DNA from: Auanema rhodensis
Lineage: Eukaryota; Animalia; Nematoda
Assembly: GCA_964057225.1 (NCBI GenBank)
Contig: OZ059894.1
Span: 19,034,001-19,098,000, forward strand
Length of the DNA: 64,000 bases
Direction of reading: 5' to 3'
This document shows, one piece after another, positions 1 through 64,000 of this stretch (positions are counted from its first letter, which is position 1; each line of letters opens with the position of its first letter). Position numbers and translations under genes: made by a program. The notes under the pieces were generated by a model. It was not told the DNA's origin, ran no database searches, and saw nothing but the letters and a program-made list of their open reading frames with translations.

Positions 1-3000
1 TCAATACAAAAATTAGTTATGATCAATTGAAAAATGATGCATTAGTGTATGTTGAGTTTCCATGTACACTCAACATTGCTTCCAAAAACATTTTGACAAA
101 AATTTTTTCGAAAAATTTCAGAATAATTTAGCAAAAAGTAGATGTTTTTAGATTCCTTTTTTTAAGGCAAAGACGATGGACAATGTTATTCAACGGAAAA
201 ATTAATTCTTCAGGGTGAAAATCGAGGATATAAGTGTGAACTTATATCAGTTGATATCTCGGTGCATTTTTAAGCTAGCGCAAATCTGATAACACAGATC
301 GACGCAGCTTAAAAATCCGCATCGAATGCACTATACTACATTGAGAAACGCTTAATACAAAAATTAGTTATGATCGTTTGAAAAATGATGCATTATTGTA
401 TGTTGAGTTTCCATGTACACTCAACATTGCTTCCAAAAACATTTTGACAAAAATTTTTTCAAAAAATTTCAAAATAAATTAGCAAAAAGTAGATGTTTTT
501 AGATTCCTTTTTTCAAGGCAAAGACGATGGACAATGTTATTCAACGAAAAAATTAATTCTTCAGGGTGAAAATCGAGGATATAAGTGTGAACTTATATCA
601 GTTGATATCTCGGTGCATTTTTAAGCTAGCGCAAATCTGATAACACAGATCGACGCAGCTTAAAAATCCGCATCGAATGCACTATACTACATTGAGAAAC
701 GCTCAATACAAAAATTAGTTATGATCGTTTGAAAAATGATGCATTAGTGTATGTTGAGTTTCCATGTACACTCAACATTGCTTCCAAAAACATTTTGACA
801 AAAATTTTTTCGAAAAATTTCAGAATAATTTAGCAAAAAGTAGATGTTTTTAGATTCCTTTTTTTAAGGCAAAGACGATGGACAATGTTATTCTACGAAA
901 AAATTAATTCTTCAGGGTGAAAATCGAGGATATAAGTGTGAACTTATATCAGTTGATATCTCGGTGCATTTTTAAGCTAACTCAAATCTGATAACACAGA
1001 TCGACGCAGCTTAAAAATCCGCATCGAATGCACTATACTACATTGAGAAACGCTCAATACAAAAATTAGTTATGATCGTTTGAAAAATGATGCATTAGTG
1101 TATGTTGAGTTTCCATGTACACTCAACATTGCTTCCAAAATATTTTGACAAAAATTTTTTCAAAAAATTTCAAAATAAAATAGCAAAAAGTAGATGTTTT
1201 TAGATTCCTTTTTTCAAGGCAAAGACGATGGACAATGTTATTCAACGAAAAAAATAATTCTTCAGGGTGAAAATCGAGGATATAAGTGTGAACTTATATC
1301 AGTTGATATCTCGGTGCATTTTTAAGCTAGCGCAAATCTGATAACACAGATCGACGCAGCTTAAAAATCCGCATCGAATGCACTATACTACATTGAGAAA
1401 CGCTTAATACAAAAATTAGTTATGATCGTTTGAAAAATGATGCATTAGTGTATGTTGAGTTTCCATGTACACTCAACATTGCTTCCAAAAACATTTTGAC
1501 AAAAATTTTTTCGAAAAATTTCAGAATAATTTAGCAAAAAGTAGATGTTTTTAGATTCCTTTTTTTAAGGCAAAGACGATGGACAATGTTATTCATCGAA
1601 AAAATTAATTCTTCAGGGTGAAAATCGAGGATATAAGTGTGAACTTATATCAGTTGATATCTCGGTGCATTTTTAAGCTAGCGCAAATCTGATAACACAG
1701 ATCGACGCAGCTTAAAAATCCGCATCGAATGCACTATACTACATTGAGAAACGCTTAATACAAAAATTAGTTATGATCGTTTGAAAAATGATGCATTAGT
1801 GTATGTTGAGTTTCCATGTACACTCAACATTGCTTCCAAAAACATTTTGACAAAAATTTTTTCAAAAAATTTCAAGATAAATTAGCAAAAAGTAGATGTT
1901 TTTAGATTCCTTTTTTCAAGGCAAAGACGATGGACATTGTTATTCAACGAAAAAATTAATTCTTCAGGGTGAAAATCGAGGATATAAGTGTGAACTTATA
2001 TCAGTTGATATCTCGGTGCATTTTTAAGCTAGCGCAAATCTGATAACACAGATCGACGCAGCTTAAAAATCCGCATCGAATGCACTATACTACATTTAGA
2101 AACGCTTAATACAAAAATTAGTTATGATCGTTTGAAAAATGATGCATTAGTGTATGTTGAGTTTCCATGTACACTCAACATTGCTTCCAAAAACATTTTG
2201 ACAAAAATTTTTTCAAAAAATTTCAAAATAAATTAGCAAAAAGTAGATGTTTTTAGATTCCTTTTTTCAAGGCAAAGACGATGGACAATGTTATTCAACG
2301 AAAAAATTAATTCTTCAGGGTGAAAATCGAAGATATAAGTGTGAACTTATATCAGTTGATATCTCGGTGCATTTTTAAGCTAGCGCAAATCTGATAACAC
2401 AGATCGACGCAGCTTAAAAATCCGCATCGAATGCATTATACTACATTGAGAAACGCTTAATACAAAAATTAGTTATGATCGTTTGAAGAATGATGCATTA
2501 GTGTATGTTGAGTTTCCATGTACACTCAACATTGCTTCCAAAAACATTTTGACAAAAATTTTTTCAAAAAATTTCAAAATAAATTAGCAAAAAGTAGATG
2601 TTTTTAGATTCCTTTTTTCAAGGCAAAGACGATGGACAATGTTATTCAACGAAAAAATTAATTCTTCAGAGTGAAAATCGAGGATATAAGTGTGAACTTA
2701 TATCAGTTGATATCTCGGTGCATTTTTAAGCTAGCGCAAATCTGATAACACAGATCGACGCAGCTTAAAAATCCGCATCGAATGCACTATACTACATTGA
2801 AAAACGCTTAATACAAAAATTAGTTATGATCGTTTGAAAAATGATCCATTAGTGTATGTTGAGTTTCCATGTACACTCAACATTGCTTCCAAAAACATTT
2901 TGACAAAAATTTTTTCGAAAAATTTCAAAATAAATTAGCAAAAAGTAGATGTTTTTAGATTCCTTTTTTCAAGGCAAAGACGATGGACAATGTTATTCAA

Positions 3001-6000
3001 CGAAAAAATTAATTCTTCAGGGTGAAAATCGAGGATATAAGTGTGAACTTATATCAGTTGATATCTCGGTGCATTTTTAAGCTAGCGCAAATCTGATAAC
3101 ACAGATCGACGCAGCTTAAAAATCCGCATCGAATGCACTATACTACATTAAGAAACGCTTAATACAAAAATTAGTTATGATCGTTTGAAAAATGATGCAT
3201 TAGTGTATGTTGAGTTTCCATGTACACTCAACATTGCTTCCAAAAACATTTTGACAAAAATTTTTTCGAAAAATTTCAAAATAATTTAGCAAAAAGTAGA
3301 TGTTTTTAGATTCCATTTTTCAAGGCAAAGACGATGGACAATGTTATTCAACGAAAAAATTAATTCTTCAGGGTGAAAATCGAGGATATAAGTGTGAACT
3401 TATATCAGTTGATATCTCGGTGCATTTTTAAGCTAGCGCAAATCTGATAACACAGATCGACGCAGCTTAAAAATCCGCATCGAATGCACTATACTACATT
3501 AAGAAACGCTTAATACAAAAATTAGTTATGATCGTTTGAAAAATGATGCATTAGTGTATGTTGAGTTTCCATGTACACTCAACATTGCTTCCAAAAACAT
3601 TTTGACAAAAATTTTTTCGAAAAATTTCAAAATAATTTAGCAAAAAGTAGATGTTTTTAGATTCCATTTTTCAAGGCAAAGACGATGGACAATGTTATTC
3701 AACGAAAAAATTAATTCTTCAGGGTGAAAATCGAGGATATAAGTGTGAACTTATATCAGTTGATATCTCGGTGCATTTTTAAGCTAGCGCAAATCTGATA
3801 ACACAGATCGACGCAGCTTAAAAATCCGCATCGAATGCACTATACTACATTAAGAAACGCTTAATACAAAAATTAGTTATGATCGTTTGAAAAATGATGC
3901 ATTAGTGTATGTTGAGTTTCCATGTACACTCAACATTGCTTCCAAAAACATTTTGACAAAAATTTTTTCGAAAAATTTCAAAATAATTTAGCAAAAAGTA
4001 GATGTTTTTAGATAGATTCCATTTTTCAAGGCAAAGACGATGGACAATGTTATTCAACGAAAAAATTAATTCTTCAGGGTGAAAATCGAGGATATAAGTG
4101 TGAACTTATATCAGTTGATATCTCGGTGCATTTTTAAGCTAGCGCAAATCTGATAACACAGATCGACGCAGCTTAAAAATCCGCATCGAATGCACTATAC
4201 TACATTGAGAAACGCTTAATACAAAAATTAGTTATGATCGTTTGTAAAATGATGCATTAGTGTATGTTGAGTTTCCATGTACACTCAACATTGCTTCCAA
4301 AAACATTTTGACAAAAATTTTTTCGAAAAATTTCGAATTAATTTAGCAAAAAGTAGATGTTTTTAGATTTCATTTTTTAAGGCAAAGACGATGGACAATG
4401 TTATTCAACGAAAAAATTAATTCTTCAGGGTGAAAATCGAGGATATAAGTGTGAACTTATATCAGTTGATATCTCGGTGCATTTTTAAGCTAGCGCAAAT
4501 CTGATAACACAGATCGACGCAGCTTAAAAATCCGCATCAAATGCACTATACTACATTGAGAAACGCTTAATACAAAAATTAGTTATGATCGTTTGTAAAA
4601 TGATGCATTAGTGTATGTTGAGTTTCCATGTACACTCAACATTGCTTCCAAAAACATTTTGACAAAAATTTTTTCGAAAAATTTCGAATTAATTTAGCAA
4701 AAAGTAGATGTTTTTAGATTTCATTTTTTAAGGCAAAGACGATGGACAATGTTATTCAACGAAAAAATTAATTCTTCAGGGTGAAAATCGAGGATATAAG
4801 TGTGAACTTATATCAGTTGATATCTCGGTGCATTTTTAAGCTAGCGCAAATCTGATAACACAGATCGACGCAGCTTAAAAATCCGCATCGAATGCACTAT
4901 ACTACATTGAGAAACGCTTAATACAAAAATTAGTTATGATCGTTTGAAAAATGATCCATTAGTGTATGTTGAGTTTCCATGTACACTCAACATTGCTTCC
5001 AAAAACATTTTGACAAAAATTTTCTCAAAAAATTTCAAAATAAATTAGCAAAAAGTAGATGTTTTTGGATTCCTTTTTTCAAGGCAAAGACGATGGACAA
5101 TGTTATTCAACGAAAAAATTAATTCTTCAGGGTGAAAATCGAGGATATAAGTGTGAACTTATATCAGTTGATATCTCGGTGCATTTTTAAGCTAGCGCAA
5201 ATCTGATAACACAGATCGACGCAGCTTAAAAATCCGCATCGAATGCACTATACTACATTGAGAAACGCTTAATACAAAAATTAGTTATGATCGTTTGAAA
5301 AATGATGCATTAGTGTATGATGAGTTTCCATGTACACTCAACATTGCTTCCAAAAACATTTTGACAAAAATTTTTTCGAAAAATTTCAAAATAATTCAGC
5401 AAAAAGTAGATGTTTTTAGATTCCTTTTTTCAAGGCAAAGACGATGGACAATGTTATTCAACGAAAAAATTAATTCTTCAGGGTGAAAATCGAGGATATA
5501 AGTGTGAACTTATATCAGTTGATATCTCGGTGCATTTTTAAGCTAGCGCAAATCTGATAACACAGATCGACGCAGCTTAAAAATCCGCATCGAATGCACT
5601 ATACTACATTGAGAAACGCTTAATACAAAAATTAGTTATGATCGTTTGAAAAATGATGCATTAGTGTATGATGAGTTTCCATGTACACTCAACATTGCTT
5701 CCAAAAACATTTTGACAAAAATTTTTTCGAAAAATTTCAAAATAATTCAGCAAAAAGTAGATGTTTTTAGATTCCTTTTTTCAAGGCAAAGACGATGGAC
5801 AATGTTATTCAACGAAAAAATTAATTCTTCAGGGTGAAAATCGAGGATATAAGTGTGAACTTATATCAGTTGATATCTCGGTGCATTTTTAAGCTAGCGC
5901 AAATCTGATAACACAGATCGACGCAGCTTACAAATCCGCATCGAATGCACTATACTACATTGAGAAACGCTTAATACAAAAATTAGTTATGATCGTTTGA

Positions 6001-9000
6001 AAAATGATGCATTAGTGTATGATGAGTTTCCATGTACACTCAACATTGCTTCCAAAAACATTTTGACAAAAATTTTTTCGAAAAATTTCAAAATAAATTA
6101 GCAAAAAGTAAATGTTTTTAGATTCCTTTTTTCAAGGCAAAGACGATGGACAATGTTATTCAACAAAAAAATTAATTCTTCAGGGTGAAAATCGAGGATA
6201 TAAGTGTGAACTTAAATCAGTTGATATCTCGGTGCATTTTTAAGCTAGCGCAAATCTGATAACACAGATCGACGCAGCTTAAAAATCCGCATCGAATGCA
6301 CTATACTACATTGAGAAACGCTTAATACAAAAATTAGTTATGATCGTTTGAAAAATGATCCATTAGTGTATGTTGAGTTTCCATGTACACTCAACATTGC
6401 TTCCAAAAACATTTTGAAAAAAATTTTTTCGAAAAATTTCAAAATAATTTAGCAAAAAGTAGATGTTTTTAGATTCCTTTTTTCAAGGCAAAGACGATGG
6501 ACAATGTTATTCAACGAAAAAATTAATTCTTCAGGGTGAAAATCGAGGATATAAGTGTGAACTTATATCAGTTGATATCTCGGTGCATTTTTAAGCTAGC
6601 GCAAATCTGATAACACAGATCGACGCAGCTTACAAATCCGCATCGAATGCACTATACTACATTGAGAAACGCTTAATACAAAAATTAGTTATGATCGTTT
6701 GAAAAATGATGCATTAGTGTATGTTGAGTTTCCATGTACACTCAACATTGCTTCCAAAAACATTTTGACAAAAATTTTTTCGAAAAATTTCAAAATAAAC
6801 TAGCAAAAAGTAGATGTTTTTAGATTTATTTTTTCAAGGCAAAGACGATGGACAATGTTATTCAACGAAAAAATTAATTCTTCAGGGTGAAAATCGAGGA
6901 TATAAGTGTGAACTTATATCAGTTGATATCTCGGTGCATTTTTAAGCTAGCGCAAATCTGATAACACAGATCGACGCAGCTTAAAAATCCGCATCGAATG
7001 CACTATACTACATTGAGAAACGCTTAATACAAAAATTAGTTATGATCGTTTGAAAAATGATGCATTAGTGTATGTTGAGTTTCCATGTACACTCAACATT
7101 GCTTCCAAAAACATTTTGACAAAAATTTTTTCGAAAAATTTCAAAATAAATTAGCAAAAAGTAGATGTTTTTAGATTCCTTTTTTCAAGGCAAAGACGAT
7201 GGACGATGTTATTCAACGAAAAAATTAATTCTTCAGGGTGAAAATCGAGGATATAAGTGTGAACTTATATCAGTTGATATCTCGGTGCATTTTTAAGCTA
7301 GCGCAAATCTGATAACACAGATCGACGCAGCTTACAAATCCGCATCGAATGCACTATACTACATTGAGAAACGCTTAATACAAAAATTAGTTATGATCGT
7401 TTGAAAAATGATGCATTAGTGTATGTTGAGTTTCCATGTACACTCAACATTGCTTCCAAAAACATTTTGACAAAAATTTTTTCGAAAAATTTCAAAATAA
7501 TTCAGCAAAAAGTAGATGTTTTTAGATTCCTTTTTTCAAGGCAAAGACGATGGACGATGTTATTCAACGAAAAAATTAATTCTTCAGGGTGAAAATCGAG
7601 GATATAAGTGTGAACTTATATCAGTTGAAATCTCGGTGCATTTTTAAGCTAGCGCAAATCTGATAACACAGATCGACGCAGCTTAAAAATCCGCATCGAA
7701 TGCACTATACTACATTGAGAAACGCTTAATACAAAAATTAGTTATGATCGTTTGAAAAATGATGCATTAGTGTATGATGAGTTTCCATGTACACTCAACA
7801 TTGCTTCCAAAAACATTTTGACAAAAATTTTTTCGAAAAATTTCAAAATAAATTAGCAAAAAGTAGATGTTTTTAGATTCCTTTTTTCAAGGCAAAGACG
7901 ATGGACGATGTTATTCAACGAAAAAATTAATTCTTCAGGGTGAAAATCGAGGATATAAGTGTGAATTTATATCAGTTGATATCTCGGTGCATTTTTAAGC
8001 TAGCGCAAATCTGATAACACAGATCGACGCAGCTTACAAATCCGCATCGAATGCACTATACTACATTGAGAAACGCTTAATACAGAAATTAGTTATGATC
8101 GTTTGAAAAATGATCCATTAGTGTATGTTGAGTTTCCATGTACACTCAACATTGCTTCCAAAAACATTTTGACAAAAATTTTTTCGAAAAATTTCAAAAT
8201 AAATTAGCAAAAAGTAGATGTTTTTAGATTCCTTTTTTCAAGGCAAAGACGATGGACAATGTTATTCAACGAAAAAATTAATTCTCCAGGGTGAAAATCG
8301 AGGATATAAGTGTGAACTTATATCAGTTGATATCTCGGTGCATTTTTAAGCTAGCGCAAATCTGATAACACAGATCGACGCAGCTTACAAATCCGCATCG
8401 AATGCACTATACTACATTGAGAAACGCTTAATACAGAAATTAGTTATGATCGTTTGAAAAATGATCCATTAGTGTATGTTGAGTTTCCATGTACACTCAA
8501 CATTGCTTCCAAAAACATTTTGACAAAAATTTTTTCGAAAAATTTCAAAATAAATTAGCAAAAAGTAGATGTTTTTAGATTCCTTTTTTCAAGGCAAAGA
8601 CGATGGACAATGTTATTCAACGAAAAAATTAATTCTCCAGGGTGAAAATCGAGGATATAAGTGTGAACTTATATCAGTTGATATCTCGGTGCATTTTTAA
8701 GCTAGCGCAAATCTGATAACACAGATCGACGCAGCTTAAAAATCCGCATCGAATGCACTATACTACAATGAGAAACGCTTAATACAGAAATTAGTTATGA
8801 TCGTTTGAAAAATGATCCATTAGTGTATGTTGAGTTTCCATGTACACTCAACATTGCTTCCAAAAACATTTTGACAAAAATTTTTTCGAAAAATTTCAAA
8901 ATAAATTAGCAAAAAGTAGATGTTTTTAGATTCCTTTTTTCAAGGCAAAGACGATGGACAATGTTATTCAACAAAAAAATTAATTCTTCAGGGTGAAAAT

Positions 9001-60900: not shown

Positions 60901-62161
60901 ATGGACAATGTTATTCAACGAAAAAATTAATTCTTCAGGGTGAAAATCGAGGATATAAGTGTGAACTTATATCAGTTGATATCTCGGTGCATTTTTAAGC
61001 TAGCGCAAATCTGATAACACAGATCGACGCAGCTTAAAAATCCGCATCGAATGCACTATACTACATTGAGAAACGCTCAATACAAAAATTAGTTATGATC
61101 GTTTGAAAAATGATGCATTAGTGTATGTTGAGTTTCCATGTACACTCAACATTGCTTCCAAAAACATTTTGACAAAAATTTTTTCGAAAAATTTCAAAAT
61201 AATTTAGCAAAAAGTAGATGTTTTTAGATTCCTTCTTTCAAGGCAAAGACGATGGACAATGTTATTCAACGAAAAAATTAATTCTTCAGGGTGAAAATCG
61301 AGGATATAAGTGTGAACTTATATCAGTTGATATCTGGGTGCATTTTTAAGCTAGCGCAAATCTGATAACACAGATCGACGCAGCTTAAAAATCCGCATCG
61401 AATGCACTATACTACATTGAGAAACGCTTAATACAAAAATTAGTTATGATCGTTTGAAAAATGATGCATTAGTGTATGTTGAGTTTCCATGTACACTCAA
61501 CATTGCTTCCAAAAACATTTTGACAAACATTTTTTCAAAAAATTTCAAAATAAATTAGCAAAAAGTAGATGTTTTTAGATTCCTTTTTTCAAGGCAAAGA
61601 CGATGGACAATGTTATTCAACGAAAAAATTAATTCTTCAGGGTGAAAATCGAGGATATAAGTGTGAACTTATATCAGTTGCTATCTCGGTGCATTTTTAA
61701 GCTAGCGCAAATATGATAACACAGATCGACGCAGCTTAAAAATCCGCATCGAATGCACTATACTACATTGAGAAACGCTTAATACAAAAATTAGTTATGA
61801 TCGTTTGAAAAATGATCCATTAGTGTATGTTGAGTTTCCATGTACACTCAACATTGCTTCCAAAAACATTTTGACAAAAATTTTTTCAAAAAATTTCAAA
61901 ATAAATTAGCAAAAAGTAGATGTTTTTAGATTCCTTTTTTCAAGGCAAAGACGATGGACAATGTTATTCAACGAAAAAATTAATTCTTCAGGGTGAAAAT
62001 CGAGGATATAAGTGTGAACTTATATCAGTTGATATCTGGGTGCATTTTTAAGCTAGCGCAAATATGATAACACAGATCGACGCAGCTTAAAAATCCGCAT
62101 CGAATGCACTATACTACATTGAGAAACGCTTAATACAAAAATTAGTTATGATCGTTTGAAA

Positions 62162-62221
62162 AATTATTCTATTTTACTAGTCTACGACGTTAAATAAGAA
62201 TTATATTTATTCGAAATGCTT
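62162..62221 (-). repeat. DIRS right terminus: rE extension (62162-62198) plus outer part of the right inverted terminal repeat (from 62199; inner boundary undetermined)
   Basis: 62162-62215 is the exact 54-bp reverse complement of 62593-62646. 62199-62221 (AATTATATTTATTCGAAATGCTT) is an exact 23-bp direct repeat of 62643-62665. The rE/ITR split is inferred from the DIRS1 model. Confidence 0.88.
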
Positions 62222-62592
62222 TATTTCGTAATAGGTCCTCACATAAAACAAACAAAAAAAAATTCAAATTATCTCTCAGGTTCCCTTTCCCACGTTTCTT
62301 TGGGCGGGAAATAGTGAGAGTAAGCGATCGTCCTTATTCATTTCAGGTGTCCAAAAAAGGAAGAATAGAAAGGCAGCATAACAATAACAAAATAAAAGAA
62401 CAATAGTAACAGAAGGAAAGGAAAGGCTGCGGATAGCAGGCAGCATGCTAACCTATCTCTTGCGGTCGTAGTTGGTGCGTTGTGCAGGCTTGAATCTGGA
62501 AAGTTATGATAAAGACATCGAAAGTGGGCGAGCTCGAGTGGAAGTCCTCAGGTTGGTTAGCGGGAGCGCAGTAGGGGTGGAGGTGGGAGATA

Positions 62593-62665
62593 TTCGAATA
62601 AATATAATTCTTATTTAACGTCGTAGACTAGTAAAATAGAATAATTATATTTATTCGAAATGCTT
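62593..62665 (-). repeat. DIRS internal complementary region (ICR)
   Basis: Begins 2 nt after the YR stop codon. One part (62593-62646) is complementary to the element's 3' end. The other (62643-62665) is complementary to the predicted left-ITR start. The two overlap in AATT (62643-62646). Confidence 0.92.
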
Positions 62666-62667
62666 CT

Positions 62668-63936
62668 TCAAAAAAGAATCTTGGACTGGAACGAGGTTCT
62701 TCGCTCATAGTGGGTGAAGAAGGTTTTTTCTGAAGCCCAGTTAGCCGCCTTGAGGATGTCGCCTATAGGTAGACCTTGCGCTAGTGCCTTCGAGGTCACA
62801 GCCGAGCGTGTTGAGTGAGCTTTGAAGGTAGTGGGTATGCCCGCGCTGTGCAGGGTCTTTCTAATCCAACCAGAAATGGTGGTGGGTTCCACTGCTGCTC
62901 CATTCTTTCTGTTAAGAAAGAGGCATCTTGTTCGGCGGAGTTCCATGGTTCGAGATAGGTATTCATTTATGCAGTTAATAGGGCACAGGTTATTGCGTGT
63001 GGGGAAGTTCTCGAACTTCGCTTCATGCGGGGGTCCCTTAGATCTGTTTTTATTGCGTTTATTTATGAAGAAAGTTAACCCTTCTGCGTCGATACGCATG
63101 TGATCTAGGGAGAAAACGGCCAATTCGCTCACCCTCTTTGGAGAGCATAGGGCCAATAGAGTGGCTAGCTTGTGAGTGAGAGACTCTAGGCTGAGTTGGA
63201 CGTTGGGGCCCAGCCTATCAAGGAAGTCCAAGACTTCGGAGGGGTCCCAGGTGTCTACGTACCTAGCCCCTGAAGGCTTCTCTCTGAACAAACCCCTCAT
63301 GAGGCGGAGGAGCAGCACGTTCTCCTTTAGGGAGGGGGAGACCCCTAGGTGATCGGCCAATGCGGATATCGCTACCTTGTGTATGCGTACTGTGGAGAAG
63401 GCCTTAGTTTGAGCGAGAAATGATAGATAGTTAGCAACCGTTACTGGGTTGGGAGTAAAAGGTATCTTCTGCTTATTGCAGTAAGCTTTCCAGTTCTTGA
63501 GAGCACAGCCGTACTGTTTGCGTGTTCCTGGGGCCCAGGATTCGTTTAGGAGTCTCTTAGTCTCTGCTGTTACTCCCTCAAAGGAGTTTGTTAAATCTTC
63601 CACGCTGCTAATTGGAAATTCGGCGACTGCAGGAGAGGATGTGGGTTTCCTTCCCGGTCGGACAGCAGGTTCGGGTGTTGGAGCAGCAAGGGAGGCTCCT
63701 TGGATCTCTCTTGGAGTAGGGGAAACCACATTTGGCTCTTCCAGAATGGTGCTATCACTATAGCCGACCTCTGGGAGCTGGCGAGCTTTCCTAAGGTCTT
63801 GTGCAGGAGGTGGAAAGGTGGAAATACGTAAAGTAATCCGTCTGGCAGCTGCTGCCAATTGAACAAGAGTGCGTTCACTCCTAATGCGGCGCAATCTGGA
63901 AAGAAGGAGTAGAAAAGGGCGCATTTGGCGTTCCAA
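62668..63936 (-). CDS. DIRS1-type tyrosine recombinase (phage-integrase family; N-terminal core-binding/SAM-like domain plus catalytic domain)
   Basis: Uninterrupted 422-codon frame; the track start is TTG and the first ATG is at 63924. Motifs: SWAPGTRKQY...VANYLSFL...STVRIHKVAIS (core-binding region), LLALCSPKRVSEL (Arg I), LCPINCINEYL, FKAHSTRS (HxxR, 62806-62817) and DILKAANWASEKTFFTHY (Trp and catalytic Tyr). True start uncertain. Confidence 0.93.
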   Translation of the reverse strand: MERQMRPFLLLLSRLRRIRSERTLVQLAAAARRITLRISTFPPPAQDLRKARQLPEVGYSDSTILEEPNVVSPTPREIQGASLAAPTPEPAVRPGRKPTSSPAVAEFPISSVEDLTNSFEGVTAETKRLLNESWAPGTRKQYGCALKNWKAYCNKQKIPFTPNPVTVANYLSFLAQTKAFSTVRIHKVAISALADHLGVSPSLKENVLLLRLMRGLFREKPSGARYVDTWDPSEVLDFLDRLGPNVQLSLESLTHKLATLLALCSPKRVSELAVFSLDHMRIDAEGLTFFINKRNKNRSKGPPHEAKFENFPTRNNLCPINCINEYLSRTMELRRTRCLFLNRKNGAAVEPTTISGWIRKTLHSAGIPTTFKAHSTRSAVTSKALAQGLPIGDILKAANWASEKTFFTHYERRTSFQSKILF

Positions 63937-63998
63937 GTGGACGCGAACAGGTCTATTTTGGGTTCACCCCATTTGGAAAATATTGATCTAGTGATCTC
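63591..63998 (-). CDS. C-terminus of DIRS pol ORF: DAM-like (N6-adenine) methyltransferase domain, 5'-truncated by window edge
   Basis: The 95-aa track ORF stays open upstream to the window end. My translation reads EITRSIFSKWGEPKIDLFASTWNAKCALFYSFFPDCAALGVNALLFNW...LLYVFPPF...AIVIAPFWKSQMWFPLL. DLFAS (63939-63953), YxFPPF (FPPF at 63813-63824) and APxWxxQxWF match the DIRS1 MT-domain pattern as I recall it. Confidence 0.9.
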   Translation of the reverse strand, partial: EITRSIFSKWGEPKIDLFASTWNAKCALFYSFFPDCAALGVNALLFNWQQLPDGLLYVFPPFHLLHKTLGKLASSQRSAIVIAPFWKSQMWFPLLQERSKEPPLLLQHPNLLSDREGNPHPLLQSPNFQLAAWKI

Positions 63999-64000
63999 CG

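Follow-up and report, generated by a model that had tools for sequence, protein, structure and literature searches.

The window, by which we mean the whole 64,000-nucleotide stretch of Auanema rhodense DNA that was analysed, is occupied over nearly its entire length by a single tandem array. Analysis with Tandem Repeats Finder (TRF) placed this array on the plus strand between positions 3 and 62164 and resolved it into 177 copies of a 351-bp satellite monomer with 98% matches between copies. The array gives way at 62165 to a mobile element of 4,427 bp on the minus strand, the 3' 1.8 kb of which makes up the remainder of the window (62165-64000). The complete element was read from the overlapping locus L031 (C1:19094001-19103000; window position equals L031 position plus 60000), where it spans positions 2165-6591. 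Its 3' end carries a 35-nt terminal extension (62165-62199, minus strand) beyond the right inverted terminal repeat (ITR), which begins at 62200 and extends over 147 nt to 62346 on the same strand; the partner ITR lies outside the window at C1:19100445-19100591, and an inverted-repeat search of L031 found the two arms (L031 2200-2346 and 6445-6591) to be 99% complementary over the 147 nt. An internal complementary region (ICR) with inverted repeats to both ends of the element is located at 62593-62665 on the minus strand, its first part (62593-62646) being complementary to the right end over 54 nt at 100% and its last part (62641-62665) to the left end over 25 nt at 96%. Read on the plus strand, the ICR consists of the right-end complement, a single ATT and the left-end complement, which is the sequence of the joined ends of a circle.

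Two overlapping open reading frames (ORFs), both on the minus strand, account for the coding part of the element. The ORF at 62668-63936, identified from the ORF list and by Pfam, encodes a tyrosine recombinase (YR) of 422 aa that matches PF00589 (Phage_integrase) with an E-value of 4.5e-8 and 33.5 bits, above the curated cut-off of 27.1, and in whose translation the KR...HSTR...HY motifs are readable. Comparison of the YR sequence with solved structures returned nothing useful, its one match (E=0.29) being attributable to chance. The other ORF, of 940 aa (L031 3591-6413), has its 3' part at 63591-64000, leaves the window and reaches C1:19100413, and it overlaps the YR ORF by 346 nt. It contains a putative Gag, a reverse transcriptase (RT) detected by Pfam as RVT_1 (E=1.1e-21, residues 398-560) and a weak Dam-like methyltransferase region at residues 798-902, where the match to PF05869 (E=0.01, 15.9 bits) falls below the cut-off of 28.1; a Pfam search of this ORF at a lax threshold gave no separate RNase H call. 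A consensus was built for the satellite monomer only, as a coordinate system, and the sequence of the element was left unrepaired. With its ITRs, ICR, RT ORF and YR ORF, the element is a complete DIRS1-type tyrosine-recombinase retrotransposon.

The junction between satellite and element can be read to the nucleotide. Uninterrupted monomers read ...gtttgaaaaatgatgc/gatcc, while the letters at the junction read ...gatcgtttgaaaaat/tattctatttt...; expressed at the 62164/62165 boundary, monomer sequence ending in GATCGTTTGAAAAAT is normally followed by GATGC or GATCC and is here followed by TATTCTATTTTACTAG. The last three satellite bases, AAT at 62162-62164 (ATT on the element strand; no strand is assigned to the feature itself), are at the same time the first bases of the ICR match, such that the 54-nt, 100% complementary arms at 62162-62215 and 62593-62646 include them, and they correspond to monomer positions 31-33 in the TRF register. 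At the far end, which lies outside the window at L031 6589-6591, the element reads ...CGAATAAATAT-AAT-gatccattag, and the satellite restarts with GATCCATTAG in exact phase, with 0 satellite bases lost or gained. The window element is thus flanked by AAT on both sides, and the trinucleotide occurs once in the ICR, between the complements of the two ends, and once on each side of each insertion. The initial annotation had described a satellite that halts after this AAT, an AAT common to satellite and element terminus, and a junction lacking filler and decay; the TRF end at 62164, the 54-nt ICR match, the letters themselves and the exact satellite phase at both ends bear out all three statements.

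In DIRS1-like elements the termini are NTT, mostly ATT, and equal the 3-bp circle junction; these elements integrate by recombining with the same 3 bp in the target, without target-site duplication (PMC3266345; PMC7192593). The structure and junction rule of the A. rhodense element are those described for this group (PMC3266345; PMC7192593). With Dictyostelium DIRS-1, DrDIRS1, TcDirs1 and others it has several features in common: its ITRs carry an extension at one end, its ICR reproduces the joined termini, its RT and YR ORFs overlap extensively, its terminal ATT/AAT is the trinucleotide of the circle junction, and there is no target-site duplication past the shared trinucleotide (PMC3266345). 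It differs from them in its nematode host, in its small size of 4.4 kb and in insertions that are resolved to the nucleotide within one satellite and recur at a hot spot. PAT-like elements (Panagrellus PAT, Pristionchus, C. briggsae) belong to the same order, DIRS, occur in the same phylum and likewise combine RT with YR; they carry split direct repeats, whereas the A. rhodense element, classed here by its structure, has ITRs and an ICR. A survey from 2011 found only PAT-like and no DIRS1-like elements in nematodes (PMC3266345). Within this established order the element is a new member, found in a phylum that was reported to be without the DIRS1-type structure.

Genome searches with both halves of the element recovered the same 12 loci, which constitute family 1 and are 97-100% identical; neither half detected further relatives above about 72% identity. 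All 12 copies have the 351-bp satellite on both flanks, with AAT on both sides in nine and AAG on the left in the three copies on C6. Five copies occupy what we term site A, GTTTGAAAAAT followed by GATGC, at monomer positions 31-33 in plus orientation: the window copy at C1:19096165 and those at C1:19280004, C1:19393784, C1:19399615 and C4:19251332. Site B, TTCG(A/G)nAAAAT followed by TTTTGTC, lies on the complement of positions 100-102 and is occupied at C1:5518031 and C1:5526296, and the three copies with AAG on the left (C6:1481160, C6:2000843 and C6:2013695) have the site B position on the same complement of 100-102 and are denoted B'. Site C, GCTTAAAAAT followed by CCGCAT (positions 312-314), is represented by C3:4558492, and site D, GGAAGCAAT followed by GTTGAG (complement of 73-75), by C5:18075135. 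Family 1 has therefore inserted at four monomer positions and in both orientations. Strict specificity for one monomer position was rejected on account of sites B, C and D, as was a strict requirement for AAAAAT on account of site D, which reads gcAAT. The original description of a young DIRS1 element is upheld. Ten of the 12 copies have an open YR frame. In the C4 copy, the YR frame (C4:19251837-19253103) is split into two overlapping pieces covering residues 1-347 and 336-422, and the C3 copy (C3:4558492-4596808) is divided into three pieces by two large insertions, each of about 17 kb. Within the 1.48-2.02 Mb interval of C6 that holds the three AAG copies, AAG at the target position also occurs in 1 of 23 uninterrupted local monomers; the AAG may reflect a variant target monomer or a later mutation.

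The general difficulty of assembling satellites raises the question of whether the junction could be an artefact in which unrelated reads were joined, and nothing else speaks for this. Against it, both ends of the window element are in exact satellite phase, one junction rule holds in 12 copies at four sites and the assembly is reported to be based on PacBio HiFi reads. As the two-sided structure is found in 12 of 12 copies, chance and misassembly are ruled out; we rejected misassembly on this ground and on that of the phase at both ends, and regard its probability as negligible.

The satellite that receives these insertions is a major component of the genome. A 35-mer of the monomer has 119,393 genome-wide matches with up to two mismatches, corresponding to a minimum of 41.9 Mb (23% of the 180,911,798-base assembly) distributed over several chromosomes, at both ends of several of which it forms multi-megabase blocks. 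The assembly is that of the A. rhodense APS4 germline (180.9 Mb, PacBio HiFi), for which all autosomal repeat blocks were reported to have low, germline-only coverage, terminal repeat blocks to disappear from somatic nuclei at the 12-cell stage and eliminated DNA to contain thousands of tRNA loci (bioRxiv 10.64898/2026.08.27.747507). The published FISH probe for AT-1, an eliminated autosomal repeat, has 138,553 matches with a 176-bp period, amounting to about 24 Mb or 13.5% of the assembly, and the start of the C1 scaffold (C1:1-17600) consists of a 176-bp satellite matching this probe. Because AT-1 is the 176-bp repeat, and in view of the description of terminal repeats in the preprint, the 351-bp repeat is probably the second autosomal-terminal germline-restricted repeat, AT-2. 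No DIRS copies were found in the 176-bp AT-1 satellite, and DIRS elements are unmentioned in the preprint (bioRxiv 10.64898/2026.08.27.747507). The DIRS copies are each presumed to lie in eliminated DNA. At C1:17.20 Mb (L044 5635-8909), a fragment of a second DIRS family adjoins a tandem array of 247-bp and 367-bp periodicity, the unit of which includes tRNA-like sequence, in keeping with the tRNA loci reported from eliminated DNA.

Copies within a satellite may multiply with the array that contains them, and we therefore considered how many separate integrations the 12 copies represent. The copies at C1:19393784 and C1:19399615, 5.8 kb apart, have their downstream flank in common with 1 mismatch in 1,400 nt, those at C1:5518031 and C1:5526296 have their upstream flank in common with 0 mismatches, and the C6 trio have in common both the AAG variant and substitutions within the element. 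To judge from these comparisons, array dynamics produced at least 4 of the 12 copies by simple duplication, and it is conceivable that one or very few insertions were spread to all 12 loci by unequal crossing-over, segmental duplication or gene conversion, a process for which these same pairs and trio, and a 221-bp DIRS fragment that has been taken up into a tandem unit on C3, provide precedent. The flanks of the site A events, however, show 20-35 mismatches per 1,400 nt, which equals the divergence of random in-register satellite pairs; their first differences appear 4-101 nt from the junction, as in controls, and on both sides begin as close as 4-8 nt from it. Spread from a single insertion is also at odds with the use of four monomer positions in both orientations and with the presence of an unrelated family at the identical nucleotide (see below). 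The element bodies at site A on C1 differ by 0-1 nt in 3.3 kb, and the site A copy on C4, another chromosome, differs from them by 9-10 nt. Flank divergence is an imperfect test of independence because two family-2 copies that have an internal deletion in common still differ by 1% in their flanks, and the independence of the site A copies is accordingly inferred from sequence comparison. By this measure there would have been about eight family-1 events, four at site A and one each at B, B', C and D, with five as a safe minimum. A single insertion followed by duplication was rejected as the whole story, holding for 4 of the 12 copies, and we consider it improbable as a general account.

Further DIRS families are present in the assembly. 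Family 2, the YR of which is 49% identical to that of family 1 at the amino acid level, has different termini (AAT followed by AGAATTTTTTTAC at one end, GTCGAATAAATAT followed by AAT at the other), and it is found at exactly site A in the same orientation at C3:4413147/4417934, C3:4849457 and C3:4946917/4885532 (loci L036, L039, L040 and L041), which represent at least three events. One further copy (C1:3137242, L035) occupies another AAAAAT site, ACAAAAAT followed by TAGTT. The remaining copies, about half of the family-2 events, all lie in a satellite of 199-200 bp (C4:13.62-13.65 Mb, L032 and L033; C6:15.89 Mb, L034; C6:4.71-4.73 Mb, L037 and L038), where AAT or ATT stands on the left and AAC or AAA on the right. 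Family 2 tolerates AAC, AAA and ATC as targets, with the element-derived base of the mismatched overlap always on the same side, and these sequences suggest that identity at the third position of the overlap trinucleotide may be unnecessary. A 221-bp piece of family 2 (element positions 3771-3991) recurs at least 10 times at C3:4967960-4996508 with a spacing of 1,473 or 1,824 bp, so that a higher-order tandem unit on C3 now incorporates the DIRS fragment; the breakpoint at 3991 also truncates both family-2 copies in L036. A third family is represented by one copy (C1:13195578-13199988, L042) with 71-72% identity to family 2, situated within a satellite of 173/345 bp, close to the chromosome's midpoint. 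A fourth YR family, with 46-52% amino acid identity and open frames of 300-413 aa, is located at C4:12014260, C4:12056486, C4:7887082, C1:12974778, C1:12997195, C3:5288080, C6:4253658 and C8:25845325.

Tabulation of the flanks of all family-1 copies agrees with the expectation of the initial annotation in that the satellite is present in 12 of 12, the family is not dispersed at ATT or NTT sites elsewhere and the monomer position occupied in the window was re-used in about four independent events. The strength of this association depends on the null that is applied. If insertions are weighted by the 23% share of the genome taken up by the satellite, eight of eight events in the satellite have a probability of 8e-6. 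AAAAAT, however, occurs eight times per monomer, and about 57% of its 1,662,597 sites in the genome belong to the 351-bp satellite; weighted by this share, the probability is 0.012 for eight of eight events and about 0.06 for a conservative five of five. Once these two shares (a minimum of 23% of the genome, about 57% of AAAAAT sites) are taken into account, the enrichment proves much weaker than it appears. The choice of site within the monomer also departs from chance: seven of eight events are at AAAAAT, a motif present at only 8 of the monomer's 27 oriented AAT sites (p=0.001), and site A received 7 of the 11 motif events of families 1 and 2 among eight AAAAAT sites (p about 8e-4). Family 1 is also more confined to the 351-bp satellite than family 2 (Fisher p=0.038). 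The restriction to the satellite thus appears to go only modestly beyond motif preference, and the hot spot is the stronger of the two signals; our reading of the sequences is that the preference would be real and sharper than AAAAAT itself.

These figures bear on an alternative in which there is no targeting, the element requiring loosely an A-run and AAT, the satellite holding most such sites and insertions in the compact, gene-rich retained DNA being purged quickly, which would leave survivors in repeats that the soma discards. The share of AAAAAT in the satellite is what this account would predict, and site D (gcAAT) shows the motif to be loose, as does the acceptance of AAC, AAA and ATC by family 2, which moreover lies in another satellite. 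All DIRS copies examined in the three families other than the fourth YR family are in tandem repeats, which retention explains as well as targeting does, and the genes in eliminated DNA are reported to be mostly TE-derived (bioRxiv 10.64898/2026.08.27.747507). On the other side, copies that are 99-100% identical have had little time to be purged, the eight events in the satellite have a probability of 0.012 even under the motif-weighted null, one nucleotide among the AAAAAT sites was re-used by two families, and the two families differ in their satellite share. We consider this alternative unlikely, with a real chance of being correct. The contributions of targeting and retention are inseparable in the present data, and retention in DNA that is lost from the soma probably adds to the pattern.

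A feature seen beside some of the insertion sites is GATCG 11-17 nt upstream of the crossover, which is found at sites A and C (window 62148-62164; monomer 19-33 and 295-314). Of the monomer's 27 oriented AAT sites, only three have GATC so near; GATC is also close to two of the four family-2 targets in the 200-bp repeat, and the weak Dam-like match in the element ORF is to a GATC methylase family. The upstream GATC is present at two of five distinct satellite sites, a post hoc comparison that is non-significant (p about 0.1).

We consider it likely that the element is a DIRS1-type retrotransposon whose recombinase prefers an A-run followed by AAT, with site A preferred most, and that it homes to the satellite by sequence and does not home to centromeres. 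Following the established DIRS model, a circular double-stranded cDNA would be closed on the ICR as template, and the YR would recombine this circle with the chromosome at AAT. The recombinase would favour an A-run and then AAT, and site A (GATCGTTTGAAAAAT followed by GATGC) above all. Because this preferred sequence belongs to a repeat that is present about 120,000 times, the element would effectively be satellite-homing through its sequence preference, and weak selection in DNA discarded from the soma would probably help copies to persist. The proposal in the initial annotation of a satellite-homing element is thus retained in part: the satellite is found in 12 of 12 copies and site A was re-used in about four events and by a second family, but the enrichment is weaker than it seemed. 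Likewise, the same target offered every 351 bp is indeed re-used at site A, but insertions have also gone into at least three further positions of the monomer, in both orientations.

R1 and R2 in rDNA, and TRAS and SART in telomeric repeats, are site-specific non-LTR retrotransposons of tandem repeats that rely on sequence-specific endonucleases and target-primed reverse transcription. Like them, the A. rhodense element re-uses one nucleotide of a tandem host repeat that offers thousands of identical targets. It would differ from them in using YR recombination of a circle, and it is less specific, with at least four positions used per monomer.

The initial annotation had also suggested that the element might home to centromeres, and by analogy with Dictyostelium DIRS-1 the satellite would then be the centromere. 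DIRS-1 is confined to centromeres in Dictyostelium (PMC7192593), and a pericentromeric accumulation of DIRS1 has been published for nototheniid fish. Nematode chromosomes outside Clade I are, however, holocentric (review, PMC9071541), the 351-bp satellite occupies both ends of several chromosomes in multi-megabase blocks and such blocks are reported to be lost from the soma at the 12-cell stage (bioRxiv 10.64898/2026.08.27.747507). From the literature and the layout of the repeat, namely holocentric rhabditid chromosomes and terminal, soma-eliminated blocks, this part of the earlier proposal was rejected, and we hold it to be highly improbable. The parallel with the 'safe-site' integration of Dictyostelium DIRS-1 is of another kind: in both cases a YR retrotransposon resides in heterochromatic repeat DNA where it does little harm. 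DIRS-1 clusters in itself, and its clusters act as centromeres, whereas the target in A. rhodense is a non-centromeric host satellite that the soma discards, and, unlike in DIRS-1, the preference can be written out as a short sequence, an A-run and AAT. As an analogy, the comparison holds for the safe site and not for centromere function.

A stronger proposal, which we put forward tentatively and regard as somewhat doubtful, is that the A. rhodense DIRS elements are specialised on germline-restricted satellite DNA, with recombinases that would recognise a particular sequence of the repeat unit, perhaps GATCG and then an A-run and AAT, and that they live wholly in DNA eliminated from every somatic cell. 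If true, DNA elimination would have opened a niche for retrotransposons, and these would be the first of the YR type for which a host satellite is the defined target. The literature that we searched contains no description of two YR families that re-use a host satellite at the nucleotide level in germline-restricted DNA. Very little is known of how YR retrotransposons choose their targets, the evidence beyond the 3-bp match being cytological clustering. Here the target is readable at single-nucleotide resolution from dozens of junctions in two families, and with junctions resolved to this degree the recognition sequence becomes testable. Active-looking retrotransposons that lie wholly inside DNA discarded from the soma would, in addition, bear on how DNA elimination and mobile elements shape each other.
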